A stretch of 64,000 nt of DNA from Klebsormidium nitens (Eukaryota; Plantae; Klebsormidiophyceae). Positions 3,001-45,158 of this stretch are shown here, one piece after another. The position numbers were made by a program, and so were the translations under genes. Every line of letters begins with the position of its first letter. Positions within the stretch are counted from its first letter, which is position 1. The notes under the pieces are model-generated. The model worked only from the letters and a program-made list of their open reading frames with translations. It was not told the DNA's origin and searched no databases. The stretch spans positions 62,001 to 126,000 of the forward strand of contig DF237075.1 in the NCBI GenBank assembly GCA_000708835.1, in the 5' to 3' direction.

Positions 3001-4857
3001 ACTGCAACAGGTGGCTGTTGGAAGGCAATCCTGGCTGCAGCAAGACCGCTGTCAGATGCGTTGAACCTAACGGCTTCAGATTGAGCTAGAGTACGTTAGG
3101 CCAGCCTTCCATCCACCTAAGATACAACCGGTGTTCCTTGACAATCCCGCAAGTAAACGCATTCGATGATCCAGCAATGATAGCAGGCTGACAAGGGGAT
3201 GAGTTTGCCAGAGGATCCTCATTGATACAGACCTTTACTCAAACAGGCGGGATCCTTCGACTTTAACGGAAGAGGTAATCAACGAGCTCCGGGGCTTGAG
3301 CTGACTCACGGCGGCTCCGGGTAGCGATTGTAGAACAACCCCGCGTTGTCGTGCGTCCACGCCAGCGACGTAAACTTGGCCCATTTCAGGACGTCCGACT
3401 CCTCCTGGCCGTCCGAAACCCGCAGCACGTGGACCTCCTGCCAGTCGCTCCCGCCCTTGGACAGGCCGTACGCCAAAAACTGGCCGTCCTCACTGAAGCT
3501 GTACGAGGAGAGCGCGACGGTGCCGTCGGAGCTGAGGGTGTTCGGGTCCAGGAGGATGCGGGCGGACTCCTCAGGGGCGTCCACAGACTCCTGTAAACGA
3601 AAGAAATCTTTCTTGTCAGCATGTAGCTATAAAGCAGTAGGGGAAGCCACCGCCCATGGTTTGTAGATTGGACAAAGCCCCACCCTTTCCCCCAATGAAT
3701 TCTCTCCTGAGAAGACTGCGGATAGAGGCAACTGGCTGAGTTGCAGATTTTGAGGGGCCTTCATAACACTCCTGCAGAGCTGGTGGCAAGAACTGGGACC
3801 AGAGTCAGTGGTGAAGCCCAGCTGTCGATCATCAGAAGAACTAAGATTGGCAGGGCGCAGGCGACTGGGGGACTTGCAGTTCTGACACTGCCAACAGAAG
3901 CCACAGACTCAAAAGGATGTTTTTTAAAGGGAGTACTGAAAGCTGTTCTTGAAGAATGATGCAGGCTCGGGCTCTCAAGAAAACATTCTCTGCTGAGGTA
4001 CCACGTGCTCGCTCACCACCATGTACAGCACGCTCTGGGCCTGCAGCCCCGTGTTCTTGAAGTAGAAGTACTTTGAGCCCCTCCGAAATGGCGTGCCATA
4101 CTTGGGATAGTTATAGAGCGCAGTCATGCGTTCTCTGAACTTCTCCCTGGTCTCGCATTCAGACAGAAACTTCTGGGTCACCTCATTCTGGGCGTCCACG
4201 AATGCCTTGGTTTCAGCGTCGTCGGGGTTCTCAAGCCTGCGACTCAGCAACGAAAGGAGTGGTCAGGAGGACACCTAGATCGAGTATGTCACACTGTGAC
4301 AATCTCAAAAGCTCCCAACTGACCAATTTTGTAGCGATGAAGGGGTGGTGTGACAGTGCAGAAGTACCAGAAGCTCACTAAGAAAGATACTTAAACAATG
4401 CTCATAATCTTTCAATGCCTTTTCAGCCAGAGCTGTAATCAGCTTTTAGGGTTTAGAGTTGACAAAGTGAACAGCCTCACCATCTGTATGGGTCTGCAAT
4501 TTGGTGCTTTCCATGAAACTCATCGACCACAGTCTCATCACGCCTGACCTCAGGATACTTCAACGTCGCTGCCGCAGTTTCTGCCATGGTGGACGAGCAG
4601 CGAATTGCTGAGTGCAGTCTAGCTATTCGGAATGCTGCTCGATCAGCCTGGGTGCGCTGAGCAATTGCGCCCTTTTGGAAGGCCAGCTGAGCAGACAATG
4701 AGCTGGGACTTGCTGACACTTGCGGCGCGGTTGCTGACCTGGCAGCAAACAACCTGCTCTGCTGCTGGCGCACAGTTGAGGAAGCTGTTCTTTTGAAGGC
4801 CTGAGGGACAGCGGGCAACGAGAAGAGCTGAGCAGTGCAGCTCAGGGCGGAAGGCAT
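1..4857 (-). CDS. Prolyl oligopeptidase (S9A family); C-terminal catalytic domain lies outside the window
   Basis: Phase-consistent exons 4857-4481, 4236-4017, 3590-3310, 2901-2739, 2356-2174, 1826-1704, 954-781, 12-<1. They give [94 protein letters not shown], typical of the POP N-terminal and beta-propeller region. Confidence 0.95.
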
Positions 4858-35328: not shown

Positions 35329-36823
35329 CAGGAACTTTACTCCAGCTAACTCCGCACCAGCTAACTCATGCCGATTTCACAAGCCACCGTGGCAGTACAC
35401 CCACAGTACATCTGCCAACGTGGCATCTGTACGTATTGACTTCGACTCCCCGCCGGGTCGAGTTTCAGAGGAAATCAGCCCGTCGGCCGACCGAGTGCCT
35501 TTTGTGGCAGGTTAATCAGCTTAGGGTTTGGAAACCTAAGCACTGAAACCCGGTCTAGCGGGTAGCTTAGGATGATGTCTGTTACAGGTTTGTTAAAAGT
35601 CGGTCACCGGTGCCTGGTGACTCCTGCGGTTGGAACTTGGACCCCGGGGGGTACCTGGAATATCGACCGATCACTGCGGTTGGTGCCTACTACTACCGAG
35701 AAAGAGACTGCTGGGCGGTACGGTAGCCCGGTACCATGGTCACAAGCACGGATGCCTAGAGACCCCAACATGCATACTACGGTCACTATTGTACCCGATA
35801 CCTATCTAGAGTCTCCAGAGGTTGAGCATGAGACGGTAGACCTCAGGCTCAACCGGTATCTAGTATCCGCTGTCCACCAGTGACCACTGTCCGTCGGGAG
35901 AGTACGAATCCAGGCCCAAACAATCCAGGCCCGAGTTTTTAGGCCGAATCCAGGCCGTTGATACTTCGTCCTGTCCGACACTCCGACACCCTTTCTAAAC
36001 TGTTTTGCGGACTCAGCCCGCAGTGCACACTGCACACTGCACTCCGTCCGGTGCCTACGGTAGCCTGGACCCCACCCCGGGGGTCTGTCCCACCTGGAAG
36101 ATATGTACCGGGCGCGGAGCCGCGAAACCAGACGGATACCATTTTTGGCTGTGATTTAATAAGTTGTACAGTTACAAGTACAGTTACAATTTTAGGTCAG
36201 TGTACAGTTACAAATACAATAAGAGAAACGGATTCAGTCACACTTACAGTTCTGATTACGGTTACTGTCACACTCAAAACTCCGACATGACTCTGGATAA
36301 GTAGCAACTCTAGTAGAGTGTACAGCCATGGTTAGAACGGCACAGACAGAGTTACAGAGACCAAGTTCAGTTAAAAGTTACAGTAATACAGTTACAGTTA
36401 CACTTACACTTACACTTACAGTTACAGTTACAGTTACAGTTACAGTTACAGTTACAGTTACGGTTACAGTTACAGTTACGGTTATCTGCTTTCAATTAAC
36501 CTTACTAGGTTGAGGTTCATTTAACGTTAAAATGCAGAGCTCGGTTCTTCATCGCGGGGGTGCGGCGGACGGAAAGCGAGACACAGGGAATCTATTTAAG
36601 TTCCAAAACTACGGTCAAAATCGTCCGACAAATCGACGGGCCTGGATTGTCGGGCCTGGATTGTGCGGGCCTGGATTGGTACTCTCCCCCGTCCACACCA
36701 TTTTGCCGACGGCCGGACCACTCTCAGCACAGCAAATTGCCAACGTGGCGGTATACATCCACGTCGGACACCCGAAATCGAGGAGAGTTAGCTGGATCAA
36801 AGTTAGCTGGACTAAAGTTCCTG
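35329..36823. mobile_element. Probable non-autonomous element or nested elements with two pairs of inverted repeats
   Basis: Outer pair: CAGGAACTTTACTCCAGCTAACT..CCAGCTAACTC (35329-) versus the reverse complement of GAGTTAGCTGG..AGTTAGCTGGACTAAAGTTCCTG (-36823). Inner pair: GGAGAGTACGAATCCAGGCCC..AATCCAGGCCCG (~35895-35960) versus CGGGCCTGGATT..GTACTCTCC (~36635-36698). No clear TSD. Confidence 0.6.
36375..36482. repeat. (GTTACA)n hexamer microsatellite, with degenerate copies back to ~36165
   Basis: Direct reading of gttacagttacagttaca...; this explains the TVTVTV ORF. Confidence 0.95.
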
Positions 36824-37024
36824 AATATAAATTGGGAAGATGCCTTTGGTCATTCTGTCGAAGGCGTAGAGAGTGAAATGCAATGGAGGAAGTACCGGTA
36901 AGGAGGAGCTGTGGCAGTGTAAGGAAGTTGCGGACACCTCAGCTCAAGCCGGCATCCTGCTTCAGGGAGAGAATTCTGGCAGCGTCCCAGTGACCGGGCC
37001 AGTAAGGTGATTGTCGAGGACATT

Positions 37025-40000
37025 ATGGATAACAAGCTCGAAGCTGAGGAGGGGCAGCCGGGGATACCCAACACTAAGACTGACAACTCGATTGGTGTGC
37101 ACAGTCCGGCAGGGCCCTCTTCTGGAAGGGGAAGAAGAAAGTCGGGGGCAAGAAAAGGGGGCAACAAAGCCCCCTGGTCCTGTTCGACTTGCACGCTCCT
37201 CAACTCTGCTGCAAGCGAGGAATGCGCCGCTTGCGCAGTTCCTAAAGTGCAGACCCTGCAAAGTGTCGCAGTAGAGGGCGGGGGGGAATGGCGGTCTCCG
37301 TACGGAGAAAATGACAGCGTGGCGGGCCCGTCGGTTGTTCCTGTGGGACCAGACTGGGCGTGCGCTTTGTGCACGTTTCAAAACAAGTACGGAGCAGAGG
37401 AATGCGAAATGTGCGCTCAAGGTAGAGCCCCAGAGGTTCCTTCCTCAAAGCAGACCCAGTCAGGCCCCCAAGCAAGTGGCGATGTAGAGCAACTAGGCAC
37501 GGAACAGGACGGAGAGGCTTGGACGTGCGCTCGCTGTACTTGCCAGAACAGGCATGCGGTGGAGTGGTGTTCAGCATGCGCACAACCAAAAGCCACAGAG
37601 AGTGGTTCTGCAACTTCGAATCAGCCTGAGTCATTGGGCCTAGACAAGACCACCTCAAAGGCTCCTTGCTTGGAGCCCCACGCAAACAGGGCTGCAGAAC
37701 AAACCGGAGCAGTGCCGGCGAAAGCAGAAGTGCTTGTTGATGCGACAAGCAATCATGAACCGGCAAATGGAAAGGCAACAGAAGCGGGGGCTGAGCCTCA
37801 AAACCTTGCACCAACTTCAGAAGCAAGGGAGGTGCCGAGACTCTTCTTGGAGTCAGCAAAGGAACGGTCAGGACCCAGCCTTTTTGAGGATCAGGCGGGT
37901 GAGATCATCCTTTCTTATGTTGAAGCTGATGTGTTTGATCTTGAGGCTTCTGATTCTTTGAGTGAGTGTTTGAGAAAGGCTCCTACCTCTGAGGACTCCG
38001 TACTTAAGCCTCCTGGTATGCCAAACGAAACAGCAGAGACAAAGCACTCACTCAGGATCATGCATCTTTTAGTCAACATTCACAGGGAATGTTTGTTACT
38101 TTCTTCCACCCCCGCTGTCCAGATTCCCAGCTCATAGAGATGCACACTTCCTTCTATATTCTGGACCCTTCTTGCGGTCTCCATGCCGCCCTCATCTTGT
38201 ATGTATGCTGACTCAGCACCTTCTTGCAGGTCCATCCTTTCTGCTGCAGTGTGGGATCTGTTCCAGCGACCAGACTTCCGACACGTTCTGTCTAGATGGC
38301 TGCTCCCATCGCTTCTGCACCTCGTGTTTGAAAGAAGCTGTGCAAAAACAGTTTACTGCTTTGCCTCCGGCTGAGGCTGCCTCAATCCAGCAGATCTCGG
38401 AAGCGTGTGTTTGTCCTAACTCAAGGTAAGTGTTTCGTCAGGTCACCTGTTGTCCAGGCAATTTGTTGTTTTCATATGAAACCGCTTGCTGTGTCGAGCG
38501 TGATGGTCAGGGGACTTATCTTCTGGAAAATCCGTTCAGTAGATCTGAACGGGCCGTCCAAAGTAGACGTCCCTCCATAGTACTCTGCAACCTTGTAGGA
38601 TCAAGGAGTCTGTTAACGAACTTCATACTCCGCCCCCAAGAAACGAAATTTCGTCGTGCAGCCAATTGAGTTCTATGGACGGAGATTGGTACGAGTAGAC
38701 CTGAAAGCCGTCAAATCTGTACCTCGAATTGTGGGCCTCCTTATACACCTATGCTGCAGCTGCCTCCTCATATTCGACTATCGCTTGCTTTATTTACGAC
38801 TTGGAATACTTGTTCTAATGCTGCTTATAATCGTAGGCCAGTCGCAGACTGTGGAGATCTTCTTGTGAAGGGCCGCATGGACGGCTTTTCCGATCACAGA
38901 ACGTTGCCTCCGTTTGCAGCTGCAAGACGCCCCTGACCCAGCGAGACCTTATTCTCACTGCCGGCGAGGAGCGGGCCCGTTCACACCAGCAATGGCTGTA
39001 CCGAGTGCTGACTCGAACGTTCGACCAAGAAGGGGCCAGCCCGAAGTGCGCCCGCTGCGGGGAAGAGCAGCTCTCGAGAGTCAAGGTGTCACAGCTGGGT
39101 AGCCTCTCGCTAAGAGACTGTGAGCTTTTCAATCGCTCTTCTGCCGTGGCGATCTGTCTGTTGCGCACTTTTCCGAAGCAGTTGGCAGGTTTCTTGGTGA
39201 GTGCCTGACGTTACGTTGAGCGTTATATTCCGTATGTAAGAAGCTTCGAAGCTTGTGTATGTCTCGGTGAACAGAGATGGGCATGGCCGGAAACCGGAAT
39301 CCAACATCCTACTTTTTCCATGTTGGAGCTTGCTTTAGTCGTTCGAAAGGGACGTCTGCAAGGTTCTCGACTCCTCTGGGGAGCTCTCGACGGGGCAGCT
39401 GTCTCCTTCATGACCCGTCTTTACAAGGGAGCACTTCGGCCGAGGCGCTTCAAACCTGGAGGCTAGATTTAGACCTTTCTGCAGAACTGCCCTCTCAAGT
39501 ACTTATTCTTAAAAGTTTCGACCCTGGGACCTGGTCGTTGGCCAAATCCTTTAGGACAAATGTTTCAGCGAATGGGAAAGCGAAGTAATAATTGGAAATG
39601 GAGAAGCCCGTTTGCGCGACCTCTTACCAATCGCGCAGCTGAAAGCAGAAATGTTTTCGTTGCTTGCTACGACTCCCTCCACCCCGTTAGATGTCATGGA
39701 TTTCGACAAGTACGCGGCCCGGTTGAATCGTCTTGGACTGTTCGATAAAATTTCCTACTCTCCCCCAAGCATAGCTATTTCCCCCTCCTTTCAGTGCGTA
39801 AGGCCCTCAAAGCCCGCGGCCTGGACGCCTCGGGGAAGCACCCCGAGTGCGCACAGCGGCTGGTGGACGTTTTCGCTGCCGGCGCAACCAGGGCCGACGA
39901 TCGGTGGATCTGCATCGCCTGTCCCGAGTGCAGCTGCGTCAACTGCGGCGCGGGGCTGAGCGTTCCGGGCCACGACTGCCGACAAGCGCTGTGGGGGAAA

Positions 40001-43000
40001 GTGCACGACGCCGTTGCTGAGCTCGACAAAGCGTACAAGGTACGAGCTGTATCGCTTTTTCGCTATAGCACTCATGCCCTCACCTTTGTATGAGTCGAAA
40101 GTCTGCTTCTCATCGAGGCAACTGACTAAGCTTTTCTTACATACAAGCGGGTGAGGCGTAATTTTTACGGAAGAGACCCGCAAAAAAGTTGAGCCAAGTC
40201 GTGAGTGCCTCAAAGTTCCGTCGAACTCCAGGCGTAATCGCTTCGCGTTGGTTCCGGACGTTTGCGTCTGACGTGATCCCCATTGTCTGCAGGTGTCAGC
40301 CTTTTCTCGTGTATTTCAATTTCTCGCTCGGAGGGTCATTTGCACTCTGAAGAAACATCCTCAGAACTCGATGGAGCGCAGGTTGGGTGACGATTTTTTA
40401 TTTAGCCCGCTGTGGCTCAACACGCTCATGACGTTCCCAAACCTCGGTATTTCGCGAGCCGGTTTTGCTAACCCCTTGGCGCACTCCGGTTTCAGGCGTA
40501 CCTTGTCAGCTCCATCAGCCCTCACCCCCAAAAGCTCGGCAAGAAGCAGAAAACGTCACATAAGGGCGGCAGCGTATGGGCCGCCGGAACGGGCTATGGG
40601 GGCGCCAGCGACTATTCACACCACCCCCACTTCTGGGGGGGCAAGCACGGCAAGCACAAGCAGCCCCCGCAACCCCCCCGCGAGAGCGCCGCCGAGAGCA
40701 AGGCAAAAGAAGCGGAGCGAGAAGCGGATGGTCGGCTGGGAAACGCCATGGATGCGCTGAGTGCGTGCCTTTCCGGGGGGGTGGGCGATGGGCTGGTGAC
40801 GGGTCTGAGCTTGCCCCTGGTTGCGTTGGTGCACGAGTCGGGGGTCCCGGCGAGAGTGCTCCGGGCACTGCTGCTGAACGACTCGATGATCGACGTGTCC
40901 AAGCGGGGGGCGCTGTATCTGAAGGCGTTGCAGGTGAAACTAGTTGCCGTTGCTTTAGGTTGACACTGGCCGTTAAAGGTTGGATGAAGAACTCCGGGAC
41001 GTGAGCTCGACCAGGGTCAAGCGGGTCCCAGGGGCCCATGTCACGTCAGATTCTGCAAAGATCTTCGATGAGGTGCCCTTGGATCGCACTGACCTGGACT
41101 TGCGAGGTCTCTTGCTCGAACAGCGACTAGACCAGTTCTACGCACTGTTTGCAAAGGTATGCTGGTCGTTTCATATTTGAATTTTATGCCTACAAACTTG
41201 ATGTGGTGGTTCAAAGCTCCAAAGCTGAAGTCTTGCTGGGGCGTGCAGCTGATGCGGGTGCTCGGGGCTCGAGAGGAGCTGCTTCCGGTCATCTGCGAAA
41301 GCCCACCGAAACGACCGAAAGAGGTCCCAAAACCCGCACCCACTCCACCTCCTATACTTGAAAAGACACCGCCGCCGATTGTAGAGGAGTCCCCTCGGCG
41401 CTCCGGCCGGCGGGTGAAGTCGACGGATCGGAAAGGGAAGCGGAAGCTCGAGGAGGTCGACGAAGACCTCAGCAAGGATGACGTCAGCGAGGTGGCGGGA
41501 ACTAGAGCGGAGGAGCACGAGGACGACGTCGAGGGGACGGTGCTGGGCGCGATGGAGAAGCTGTACAAGCAGGCGTCGGTTGTCAAAGTGGGGCTTATGG
41601 CGGGCGTTGCCGATGAGGGCGGAAGCGACGAGTTAGATATTGGGTTAGTGTGCGAGATTTGTGACGCGTTTGAGGAGCTGCAGCGCGCGAAGAAGGGCTG
41701 GGAGGAGGCGCGCGGCGCCCTGCGGAGCGCGCAGGGTTTTGGCGGGTTAGCACAGGGGTTAGGGGCCGGGGCGCAGGGGTTAGGGAACGGGTTACGACAG
41801 GTTTTACTAAACGGTGCTCCAGAAGCAGAAACAGCGGAGGATGACGAAGATGAAGACTGCGTGCTTCTGGATCGGCAAACTAGGAAGGGAAAGAAAGTGG
41901 AGGCGCCCGCGCCGAGCCCCGAGGAGCGCGCGCGCGCGCACGCATTGGAGGTGGTGGCGTACAAGGACGCGCTAAAGGACCTGCAGTTCCGGATGGAGCC
42001 CCTGGTGAATTCCGGCGGAAAGCCGGACCACTACTTCCGAGAGAAGAAGAACGCGATCGACAACGGGGGGGTGCACTCGCAGAAACGGATGCTGGCGATT
42101 AGTAAGGAGATTGGGAGCCTGGTAACGACGCTCCCCCTGGAATGGGGATCGTCCGTGCATTTGAGGGTGGATGAGGAGCGAATGGACCTGGTGAAGGCGC
42201 TGATTATCGGGCCGGGGGGGACGCCGTACCAGAACGGCGCGTTCCTGTTCGACATCCTGCTGCCGCCGGACTACCCACAGGTACGTAAGTCGTAGGTGTT
42301 GTCAGTAGGTGCAAAAGGAGTTGCTGAGTGCGCAGCCAATCTTGTGTGCTGTGCGGACGCCGGCCATGCCAGACGTGGCTGCACGCGTCTCTGGTTTGAC
42401 CTGACCTGCTCATTGAGTGTGTTCAACTGTTTCCTGAAGTCGTAACCCGGGGAACAAAACACGCTAAAACGTTGACGCCCGCATTGATTAGTTGGCCGGT
42501 CTTCTGTTTCTTGTTCGCCTCCTCTCATCCTGCTCTTTCGGCTTCGTTTTCCGACTCTTTGCCCCTTACATCTCGGCTTTCTACCAACCAGCGGCGACGC
42601 CAACTCCGTCGCAAACTTCATCGAACGTCATCGCCTTTGCCTCCACTGATCCGACGGCCGTGCTTGCGCCAGGTGTCGCCCAAGGTGCAGTTCATGACGA
42701 CGGGCGGCGGCCGCACCCGGTTCAACCCCAACCTGTACGCCGACGGCAAGGTCTGCCTCAGCATACTCGGCACGTGGGCGGGGCCGGGGTGGCAGCCCGG
42801 GAAGAGCACGCTCATGCAGGTGCTGCTCAGCATCCAGGGCATGATCTTCGTCCCGGAGCCCTACTTCAACGAACCGGGTGAGTAGTTCGAGCATGCCAGT
42901 TGTTTCTCTCAGGTGCGGTCTCGATCGACCATATTGCTTGCAGTCTAGCTTCCCTGGTCTCACCCTCTGTATTTGTGTATGGACTAATCCTAGGAGCATC

Positions 43001-43825
43001 ACCCTGTAGCTCTCGGACCGTTCTCGTACCCAAAGTCGATTACCTTTGACATTTGAAGCTTGCTCAAGCCAGGCGTTTCAGACAAACAGCTTGCATGTCA
43101 ACTTGAAAACGGTCCTCGATCGAAGCGAATGCGGTGGCATAAACGGTTAGGTGTTGGTCAGTGCGCCTTGGCTCGTGTGCATCTCCCGCCTTACCTGCAG
43201 GCTACATTTCGAGCGTAGTTACTCGAGGTCGTTAATATGAGGCTTAATGTCCAAAGATCCATCCCATCCGGAAAGAGCTCTTACTCCGACTTATCCATGT
43301 TTCGACGGTTTGGAAAGTTCTCCGGAGTCCGGGTACAGTCTCTGAAACCCGTTAGCTCCACCTCAAACCCTGAATTTCATTCCAGGTTACGAAGCGCACG
43401 GCAACAAGACCGCGTCCCACAGCTACACCCGCAACCAGCGGCGCAACACGCTCCAGCTGGCGGTGCTCGGCATGCTGCGCCACCCGCCCGCGGTCTTCGC
43501 TGACGTCATCCGCACGCACTTCAAGCTGAAGCGGCGGGAGATCGAGGCGCAGTGCGACGAGTGGGCCGCGGACGACTTTGCGCCGAAGCCCGCCCCCAAG
43601 GCGAAGGGAAAACCGGCAAAAAAGCCCAAGAAGAAATACCACGGAGTGGATGATATGATGGATTGGGATAGCAAAGATGATGCGGATGAAGAGTTTCTCT
43701 CGGGTCTAGTCGGAGCTGCCATGGGCGGGGCAATGGGTGGGGTGCACATCGATCACGAGACGGGGCGCGGCAGTCCGATCCAGGCGACGATGAAGGAGCT
43801 TCTGGTAGAGCTCGCCAAGTTGTGA
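37025..43825 (+). CDS. Multidomain ubiquitin enzyme: 3x RanBP2/NZF zinc finger - RING - IBR-like (with SAP) - BIRC6/BRUCE-type UBC (E2)
   Basis: Exons ~37025-37898 (or -38014), 38230-38425, 38920-39085, 39691-39709, 39795-40039, 40496-40933, 41249-42280, 42673-42877, 43386-43825, phase-consistent. Three WxCxxCTxxN..CxxC motifs; [19 protein letters not shown]; [14 protein letters not shown]; VWAAGTGYG; LLNDSMIDV; [19 protein letters not shown]; [20 protein letters not shown] (Cys at 42754-42756); PYFNEPGYE. Confidence 0.9.
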
Positions 43826-45158
43826 TTGTATGATCATACGTCCTTGAGTTGTGTTTGCTAGTCAGGCTGGTATGATCTGCAACAGAATGGTTCATAGGTA
43901 GATTGATTAGAGTGACTGCCTTGTCCCTGGTTATTATGGCGGAACTCAAGAAGCCGTATAGGCTTGAGTTATAAACTAGTGGGAGCGCTTAAGAATCTGC
44001 CTCTGCGTGCACTTTGTAAATGGAATAATCGAGAGGCGAAGTTGTGTGTCCGACCGAACCAAGTGACGATTATCATATTGCCAGCTATCCAACGTACGAC
44101 TTGGTTCTGGTACCACTTTTGCAGTTTTCAATGTCAGCGAAACATGATCGCGGCGCCCTCGGCCACTGATGTACGCGTGATCTCGAATCGATGAGTCTGT
44201 AATATAAGAAACCTTGCTCTGGCACCACTTAAAGCTATTCCGATGCAGCCGCGGCCCAGTATACGTCCTTGCATAAACATGTACGTGCAATTAATATGAG
44301 CACCGTCTTTATAACAGCTTCGTGCGGTGTCCGGATTATACTCGAAAGCACATGTGCACGTCCTTGACAGATCGGCGGCCGCGCGGGCAGCGTCTGGTGC
44401 TGACGTCCACATGTGCGCGCAACGTTCATTGAGGATCGGATCGCGCGCACATGCATGATTAGCTCGACATATTCAACGAGGCGAGTGATCTTTATTAAGC
44501 CGGGTCTCTTGTCACTGTGAGACTCAGAAAGAAGTCACGTCATGTGCCCAAAAGAGCATTAACAGCTGCAAGCACGCGCTCAGACCTGGCTAACCTTAGT
44601 TATCCGATGATCGAGATCGATTGTCTGGGAACTTTTATCCATTATAAATCTTATGGGCTGAGCACCAACCCTCTTTTCGTTGCAGCATGCGCTACTTGCG
44701 CGCATGTCTAAGAGTTTGCACTCCGCTGGTCGCTATATGCTACATCCGTTGACCACTTGGCCAGCTTGATTTCTAGGACTATACGGACACGACCACGAGC
44801 AATGTGGTGCGGTGAACTTTTCAATCCTGACCAGCCAAATGGCTCCCGAGATTCTATGTGAGAACTGCCAGGGTTGTATTCTGCAATGACTAACACGTAC
44901 CGACTCTCAAAGGAAGCAGGAGCACGTTCTAACTGCTTTCTTGCTTATTCATGTCCGACAGAAGCGACACTGATTGTACATTTGATGCACGCTCAATCCA
45001 CGGTAGCACGAGGTGACTGCATTCTATCCTTTCTTTTCCACCTCACGATTGACCAGCTGTAAGAGGCGGTCACACCAATAAGTACAGCCCTTGCGAGCGC
45101 GTGGCAGCCTCTCGCTAGCGCGCGCACGAACACCAAACTTGTCGTCACACGGAATACC

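Follow-up and report, generated by a model that had tools for sequence, protein, structure and literature searches.

A Klebsormidium nitens gene joins NZF fingers and a predicted RBR-type RING to a BIRC6-like ubiquitin-conjugating cassette in a widespread Archaeplastida family

A gene of the streptophyte alga Klebsormidium nitens, located in a 64,000-nucleotide (nt) stretch of contig DF237075.1 (positions 62,001 to 126,000; henceforth termed the window, whose numbering we use throughout), encodes a protein of 1,209 amino acids (aa) with an unusual combination of ubiquitin-related parts. Its domain order is three NZF zinc fingers, a RING resembling RING1 of RBR ubiquitin ligases, a helix, an IBR-like, two-zinc module that holds a SAP-like insert, and a cassette of ~600 aa of the BIRC6 type that includes a ubiquitin-conjugating (UBC) domain. 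The reading we favour, tentatively and partly by analogy, is that of an expressed multidomain ubiquitin enzyme from an old Archaeplastida family: a BIRC6-like hybrid between a ubiquitin-conjugating enzyme (E2) and a ubiquitin ligase (E3) that may be aimed by ubiquitin- and DNA-binding modules. What is known of E2/E3 hybrids comes, to our knowledge, from two animal-centred cases, BIRC6 and UBE2O, and RBR ligases are defined by a RING1 that passes ubiquitin to a RING2. The family described here suggests that the BIRC6 catalytic cassette is an ancient portable unit that became fused a single time, in the lineage of plants and red algae, to an RBR-type RING1 without RING2. This raises the question of what role a RING1 plays when the only nearby catalytic cysteine belongs to an E2.

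Gene structure and transcript evidence

The DNA around the gene is eukaryotic and intron-rich, and the gene occupies eight exons on the forward strand (Table 1). The original prediction, made from the DNA letters alone, had placed it between 37025 and 43825; these positions are exactly those of the start and stop codons, and all motifs that it had quoted were found. Translation begins at the first ATG following an in-frame stop at 36920, and the spliced reading frame of 3,630 nt is open. Logan contigs, which are assemblies of RNA reads, from four runs of four studies (X1, X2, X4 and X5) aligned over 37880-43870 and are 99-100% identical to the window. They contain six GT..AG joints (38425|38920, 39119|39795, 40039|40496, 40933|41249, 42280|42673 and 42877|43386), the one between exons 2 and 3 being present in all four runs, and thereby uphold the prediction that the locus is one gene with one mRNA. 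The joint between exons 1 and 2 (37898, with a GTGAGA donor; exon 2 from 38230) was placed from depth, with ~18 nt at exon-level depth in each of the four runs; it is not among the listed joints because it lies too near the left end of the aligned stretch at 37880. Two small exons that had been placed by hand (40293-40381 and 40980-41180) were rejected, the RNA joints putting both inside introns.

Intron 3 occurs in two forms, and a considerable part of the RNA contigs retains it. Contigs from X1, X2 and X4 have it spliced at a depth of 30-44 with the frame kept, and it is retained at a depth of 19-29 in 735-nt contigs of the same three runs as well as in a 4,514-nt contig of X5, which includes 1,167 nt upstream of 38229 and reaches 43714. 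Retention would lead to a 452-aa product with the three NZFs, the RING and a C-x2-C pair and without SAP, second Cys cluster and UBC. The retained form might reflect a regulated isoform or nuclear RNA awaiting splicing.

These transcripts also bear on whether the full-length protein exists at all. A neighbouring NZF-RING gene and a UBC gene might simply be read through, so that the fusion would be an artefact; Logan contigs are not single molecules, the sole contig that spans everything (X5) keeps intron 3 and would yield a protein ending at residue 452, and depth is the only source for the exon 1/2 joint. We nevertheless consider such an artefact very improbable, given that the exon 3/4 splice is found in three runs at the depth stated above, keeps the frame and builds the SAP motif across the junction, and that a collinear domain order recurs within individual annotated proteins from Marchantia, Riccia, Chlorokybus, Adiantum and Sphagnum and at an orthologous locus, L001, on a metagenome contig from JGI.

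The L001 ortholog is collinear with the K. nitens gene, and DNA similarity between the two is restricted to exons. Amino acid identity varies along the gene: NZF exon 47%, RING 67%, exon 3 74%, exon 4 55%, exon 5 72%, exon 6 71%, UBC core 98-100% and exon 8 62%. The RING exon has a ratio of nonsynonymous to synonymous substitution rates (dN/dS) of 0.065 and exon 3 one of 0.12; values for the UBC core do not exceed 0.04, with a dN of 0 in the second UBC segment (22 codons). In L001 (11522-12080 and 18015-19049), an additional intron that the K. nitens gene lacks divides exon 7, and an open reading frame for a Ty3/gypsy-type reverse transcriptase lies ~4 kb downstream.

Upstream of the K. nitens gene, an AGTTAC hexanucleotide microsatellite of ~20 copies (36364-36484) is located ~0.5 kb 5' of the start codon, just beyond the 5' end inferred for the transcript. 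A pair of short tandem repeats with units of 14-15 nt is found at 36637-36678 and 36786-36819.

Table 1. Exons, intron 3 and domain features of the K. nitens gene in window coordinates
Feature	Position	Strand	Content
Exon 1 (aa 1-292)	37025..37898	+	start codon, low-complexity N-terminus, three RanBP2/NZF fingers; 3' end from depth
NZF1	37175..37234	+	T-L/A, incomplete ubiquitin signature; conserved in L001 ortholog
NZF2	37355..37414	+	full Npl4-type T-F/Met signature
NZF3	37520..37579	+	T-C/A; absent from L001 ortholog
Exon 2 (aa 292-357)	38230..38425	+	most of the RING, C299 to C353; Pfam RING families, E ~1e-4
RING, C3HC4	38250..38923	+	aa 299-358, ends CPNSSC, interrupted by intron 2
Exon 3 (aa 357-424)	38920..39119	+	last RING Cys, post-RING helix, C400/C403, start of SAP
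SAP-like helix-extended-helix	39098..39877	+	aa 417-451, split by intron 3, inserted in the IBR-like module
Intron 3	39120..39794	+	spliced and retained forms in RNA contigs
Exon 4 (aa 424-505)	39795..40039	+	remainder of SAP, second Cys/His cluster, a helix
Exon 5 (aa 506-651)	40496..40933	+	BIRC6-type helical module with WAAGTGYG
Exon 6 (aa 652-995)	41249..42280	+	end of helical module, low-complexity linker, N-terminal UBC extension, first UBC half
Exon 7 (aa 996-1064)	42673..42877	+	UBC core; Cys1023 (42754-42756), Trp1030 (42775-42777)
Exon 8 (aa 1064-1209 and stop)	43386..43825	+	BIRC6-type C-terminal UBC helices, acidic/basic tail

Domains of the predicted protein

The C-terminal half, which the original prediction had assigned to the BIRC6 module, carries in frame the motifs WAAGTGYG (aa 533-540) and LLNDSMID (aa 631-638) and, at the active site of the UBC domain, KVC(1023)LSILGTW, with the catalytic Cys inside the (H/N)PN...G.VCLS pattern. 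Pfam UQ_con was detected on both UBC exon halves (E 7.6e-11 for exon 7, and 7.1e-6), and phmmer searches of the PDB with the UBC halves returned BIRC6 as best match (E 5.8e-17 for exon 6 and 2e-9 for exon 8), with UBE2O matching more weakly (E 4e-8 to 5e-7). The BIRC6 alignments extend over the N-terminal extension (Y..x.K.LQF...HY) and the C-terminal helices (HFxLKRxEIxxQCxEW) of the domain. Trp1030, seven residues past the catalytic Cys, coincides with W4673, the 'blocking loop' Trp of BIRC6 (PMC12999496). Exon 5 alone gave no match in PDB or Pfam and nothing useful in the ESM Atlas; a mid-module family profile (A4) made from 18 relatives together with exon 5 matched BIRC6 only in the PDB, at residues ~4283-4558 (E 7e-16), and supports the assignment for the helical module as well. 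Pfam scans of every exon were without a BIR domain match. In other, mostly protist and metagenomic, proteins, the BIRC6-type UBC cassette is joined to the U-box E4 core domain Ufd2P_core (P0239, P0245, P0251 and P0253) or to SPRY (P0180 and P0219), fusions that fit a portable E2 engine aimed by its N-terminus.

At the opposite end of the protein, regular-expression matching and direct reading identified three W-x-C-x2-C-x3-N-x6-C-x2-C fingers at aa 51-70, 111-130 and 166-185; Pfam Zn_ribbon_RanBP scored 26.8 bits on exon 1 against a cut-off of 27 (E 3e-6). The predicted Npl4-type signature for ubiquitin binding is indeed present in NZF2, where T-F directly follows the second Cys and Met precedes the last Cys (CEMC), corresponding to the T13-F14/M25 pattern of Npl4.

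The RING that follows is completed only by splicing, with CPNS closing exon 2 and SC opening exon 3. It retains the full set of eight zinc ligands, along with the Ile of CGIC that comes after the first Cys and the Pro of CPxxxC, and the ligands are invariant or nearly so across the family. Its proposed relationship to RBR RING1 domains was borne out by an AlphaFold2 (AF2) model, built on a 45-row alignment, that covers the Marchantia ortholog from RING to IBR (P0255:98-340; predicted local distance difference test score (pLDDT) 77.5). The top 28 matches of this model in VIA-align are all RBR RING1 domains (Z 6.8-9.9 over 83-90 aligned residues), among them RNF144A (Z 9.9), ARIH2 (9.4), RNF216 (8.6), parkin (8.4), HOIL-1L (8.2) and HOIP (8.1), whereas canonical RINGs reach Z values of at most 6.4 over 52-66 residues. 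With the whole RING-IBR model, the best Foldseek matches were the RBR transthiolation complexes of RNF216 and HOIL-1, and the nearest clusters in the ESM Atlas, at weak scores, were IBR/RBR families. A family profile of the RING-to-IBR region run against PDB sequences found generic RINGs only (such as RING1B/BMI1, TRIM32, RNF25 and TRAF6) and thus no RBR link by sequence. The modelled fold supports an RBR RING1 structural type for this RING.

Downstream of the post-RING helix, the chain continues with C400-x2-C403, a 35-residue SAP-like stretch and the cluster C463-x2-C466-x4-C471-x2-C474-x8-H483-x-C485, in which C-x2-C, C-x2-C-G and the His are invariant or nearly so in the family. A fold search with a model restricted to the IBR and SAP regions (pLDDT 71) found no IBR and no significant match (best Z 3.1), and the Cys/His cluster in the IBR position is a candidate IBR. 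For the insert, a SAP identity is probable: a near-ideal SAP pattern (L..LR..L..RGL...G.K..L..RL) is assembled across the exon 3/4 junction, the region is modelled as two helices with ten SAP and two LEM domains among its weak structural matches (Z 2.1-3.0), and conservation of the insert extends to Marchantia, Riccia, Diphasiastrum, Chlorokybus and Adiantum. From aa 486 to the UBC domain there is no further Cys cluster, the cysteines at 596, 667, 786, 789 and 855 being scattered and non-conserved, and the protein therefore has no RING2/Rcat, in agreement with the original prediction that the catalytic RING2 is lacking.

A family from red algae to gymnosperms

A word search and an exhaustive phmmer search in which exon 6 was the query together gave 260 BIRC6-type UBC proteins, 43 of which have a RING pattern upstream of the UBC domain. 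The nearest relatives of the K. nitens protein are from streptophytes. Similarity to relatives is collinear from RING to UBC in BLAST and MAFFT alignments; MARPO_0070s0037 of Marchantia polymorpha, for example, aligns in one high-scoring segment pair over aa 299-1125 (34% identical, E 2e-147). Members occur in the streptophyte algae Mesostigma (proteins with one and six NZFs) and Chlorokybus (two NZFs) and, as the paralog P0184, in K. nitens itself; in the chlorophyte Myrmecia (two NZFs); in non-flowering land plants, represented by the bryophytes Marchantia, Riccia and Sphagnum, by the lycophyte Diphasiastrum, by the fern Adiantum and by the gymnosperms Ginkgo and Taxus; and further in Prasinoderma and, among red algae, in Gracilariopsis, Agarophyton, Hildenbrandia and Chondrus. 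The green lineage keeps the C-x2-C...C-x2-C-x4-C-x2-C-G...H-x-C cluster together with the SAP-like insert. The red-algal branch keeps the RING, its second cluster is reduced or degenerate, and SAP is absent; some gymnosperm and Mesostigma members are without a RING that satisfies the complete regular expression.

A FastTree tree was computed from 168 UBC domains, excluding proteins shorter than 550 aa or with an incomplete UBC. All but one of the 44 RING-bearing rows fall into one 77-row subtree (support 87) made up of a green and a red group, and animal, amoebozoan and fungal BIRC6-like proteins, which carry no RING, fall outside it. The RING label changes 15 times on the tree, compared with 38 times for shuffled labels, and part of these changes are misses of the regular expression, such as Riccia P0003. 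This topology fits a single old fusion in Archaeplastida. Within the eukaryotic BIRC6-like clade we also found P0215, labelled 'MAG: ubiquitin-conjugating enzyme E2, partial [archaeon]', which is probably eukaryotic contamination of an archaeal bin.

The idea that the architecture is special to this genome did not survive these comparisons, as it is conserved across Archaeplastida with collinear relatives from red algae to gymnosperms. The original prediction had named a widespread, already described family as grounds for its refutation. Widespread the family is, and searches of the full-text literature turned up no account of a RING-UBC or RING1-IBR-UBC family, an earlier mention in the survey of E2 architectures by Burroughs et al. 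2008 being possible, and the main text of Grau-Bove et al. 2015 (PMC4327156) does not mention the architecture. Public names of members include 'hypothetical protein', 'UBC core domain-containing protein' and 'putative ubiquitin-conjugating enzyme protein 17'. The family represents a conserved and, to all appearances, undescribed form of predicted E2/E3 hybrid. No angiosperm protein appears among the named family matches, which is suggestive of a loss in angiosperms, and this apparent absence may explain the silence of Arabidopsis-centred surveys of plant ubiquitin enzymes. Marchantia polymorpha, with MARPO_0070s0037 as its single named ortholog, offers a tractable member.

The public protein set may lack the K. 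nitens gene itself or hold a faulty model of it. The exhaustive phmmer search with exon 6 returned no protein above 75% identity (P0001, a metagenome fragment), the paralog from K. nitens being present, and word searches with an alignment of the family and the window exons (A3), which retrieved just the first row of that alignment, and with Marchantia residues 1-620 (7 proteins) were without the product of this gene. The paralog P0184 (837 aa; UBC 55% identical) has its annotated start inside the RING-aligned region and keeps the SAP-like stretch as well as a C-x2-C-x4-C-x2-C-G cluster; in its public model, the N-terminus is probably cut short.

Possible mechanisms and comparison with known systems

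In the mechanism that we favour, Cys1023 of the UBC domain would be charged directly by the ubiquitin-activating enzyme (E1) and would transfer ubiquitin to substrate lysines with no separate E3, as for BIRC6 and UBE2O. The front end would select the site, NZF2 holding ubiquitin on an already ubiquitinated substrate or at a chain end and the SAP-like insert tethering the enzyme to DNA or chromatin. The unit of RING1 and IBR-like module might touch its own UBC~ubiquitin, or a ubiquitin, and so tune discharge. As a net result, ubiquitin marks would be extended or spread in a ubiquitin-dependent manner, possibly on chromatin, and the pairing of NZF and SAP hints at a ubiquitin-dependent role in chromatin or the DNA damage response in early-diverging plants.

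Several observations weigh against this reading. The full ubiquitin signature is found in one of the three fingers, NZF2, with T-L/A in NZF1 and T-C/A in NZF3, and the L001 ortholog has two NZFs, its NZF2 keeping T-F with Ala for Met and NZF3 missing. Pfam SAP gave an E of 0.017 on the exon-4 half alone, under its cut-off, and values below 1 in 2 of 17 relatives; Pfam IBR likewise stayed below threshold, with E <1 in 4 of 17 members and 0.0078 at best. For the structural comparisons, the modelled protein was the Marchantia ortholog, which is 34% identical, and not the K. nitens protein. An RBR RING1 normally keeps E2~ubiquitin open and hands ubiquitin to RING2 without direct discharge. UbcH5 and UbcH7 have, at the loop-4 position after 'YP', a Phe that RINGs grip; the residue at this position is Gln995 in the K. 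nitens UBC domain, and canonical binding of the RING to its own UBC is therefore doubtful.

The unit of RING1 and IBR-like module might have no ligase role and serve instead in ubiquitin or protein binding or in autoinhibition, the whole being an E3-independent E2 in the style of BIRC6 and UBE2O with a targeting N-terminus. Such an arrangement, which we regard as somewhat unlikely, would suit a BIRC6 cassette that needs no E3. RING1-IBR units of HOIP, HOIL-1, RNF216 and parkin bind allosteric ubiquitin, and these structures are the top matches of the model. It would also suit the red-algal branch, in which the RING is kept yet the second cluster is degenerate and SAP absent, and those gymnosperm and Mesostigma members in which the RING is not complete by regular expression. 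Set against it are the retention of all eight zinc ligands, of the CGIC Ile and of the CPxxxC Pro, the near-invariance of the ligands in the family and the low dN/dS of the RING exon.

An RBR-like relay is a further alternative: RING1 would recruit a separate, canonical E2~ubiquitin, from which ubiquitin would pass by transthiolation to Cys1023 of the in-cis UBC that replaces RING2, and this UBC would go on to modify the substrate. In a milder form of this scheme, two E2s would share the work, with priming by the recruited E2 and extension by the in-cis UBC. By the model, the RING has the structure of an RBR RING1, transthiolation complexes rank first in Foldseek for the whole RING-IBR region, and the UBC cassette occupies the place of RING2 with no other conserved Cys cluster following. 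Gln995 replaces the loop-4 Phe of RING-binding E2s, and the natural partner of the RING may therefore be another E2. A relay nonetheless appears improbable to us. Transthiolation from E2 to E2 is not an established natural reaction, the IBR-like module is a putative IBR and is separated from the UBC by ~400 residues, much of them low-complexity, and BIRC6-type UBCs are loaded directly by E1 (PMC12999496). The boldest interpretation, a new mechanistic class of 'RING1-IBR-UBC' relay ligases that NZF and SAP confine to ubiquitinated, DNA-bound targets and that ranges from red algae to gymnosperms with loss in flowering plants, would be a long shot.

Our preferred reading of a BIRC6-like hybrid aimed by its N-terminal modules can be set beside the established E3-independent E2/E3 hybrids BIRC6 and UBE2O (PMC12999496). 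With BIRC6 (BRUCE/Apollon), the K. nitens protein shares homology over the last ~600 residues, comprising the helical module with WAxGTG(Y/F)G and (L/R)NDSxxD...R..LY and a UBC domain that has the N-terminal extension, the NPN...C active site, the loop Trp and the C-terminal HFxLKRxEIxxQCxEW helix. It differs in having NZF, RING1, IBR-like module and SAP-like insert in place of the BIR domain and the ~4,200-residue scaffold (1,209 aa versus ~4,860 aa), and animal and amoebozoan BIRC6-like proteins form a separate, RING-less clade on the UBC tree. UBE2O belongs to the same UBC subfamily and is likewise a large E2 that selects its own substrates. Its UBC match is weaker, however, the WAxGTGYG/NDS module gave no UBE2O match in the PDB, and none of the conserved N-terminal regions of UBE2O is seen in the K. 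nitens protein.

Among RBR E3s, HOIL-1L has the highest identity (25-26%) to the RING and following helix, which match RBR RING1 best in the modelled fold, and a Cys/His cluster stands in the IBR position. HOIL-1/RBCK1 and HOIP, subunits of LUBAC, the complex that assembles linear ubiquitin chains, carry NZF fingers upstream of RING1-IBR-RING2, an order that the K. nitens protein follows as far as its RING1-like and IBR-like parts. Unlike these ligases, it is without RING2/Rcat and its catalytic Cys, and its IBR-like cluster is split by the SAP-like insert and recognised neither at the Pfam threshold nor by fold search. RAD18-RAD6 pairs a RING E3 that has a ubiquitin-binding zinc finger and SAP with a bound E2. 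The K. nitens protein combines RING, putative ubiquitin-binding zinc finger, SAP-like insert and E2 in one chain, whereas the E2 of RAD18 is a separate protein and its finger a UBZ and not an NZF. The likeness is one of functional analogy only, and on that analogy the shared parts suggest DNA-associated ubiquitin writing.

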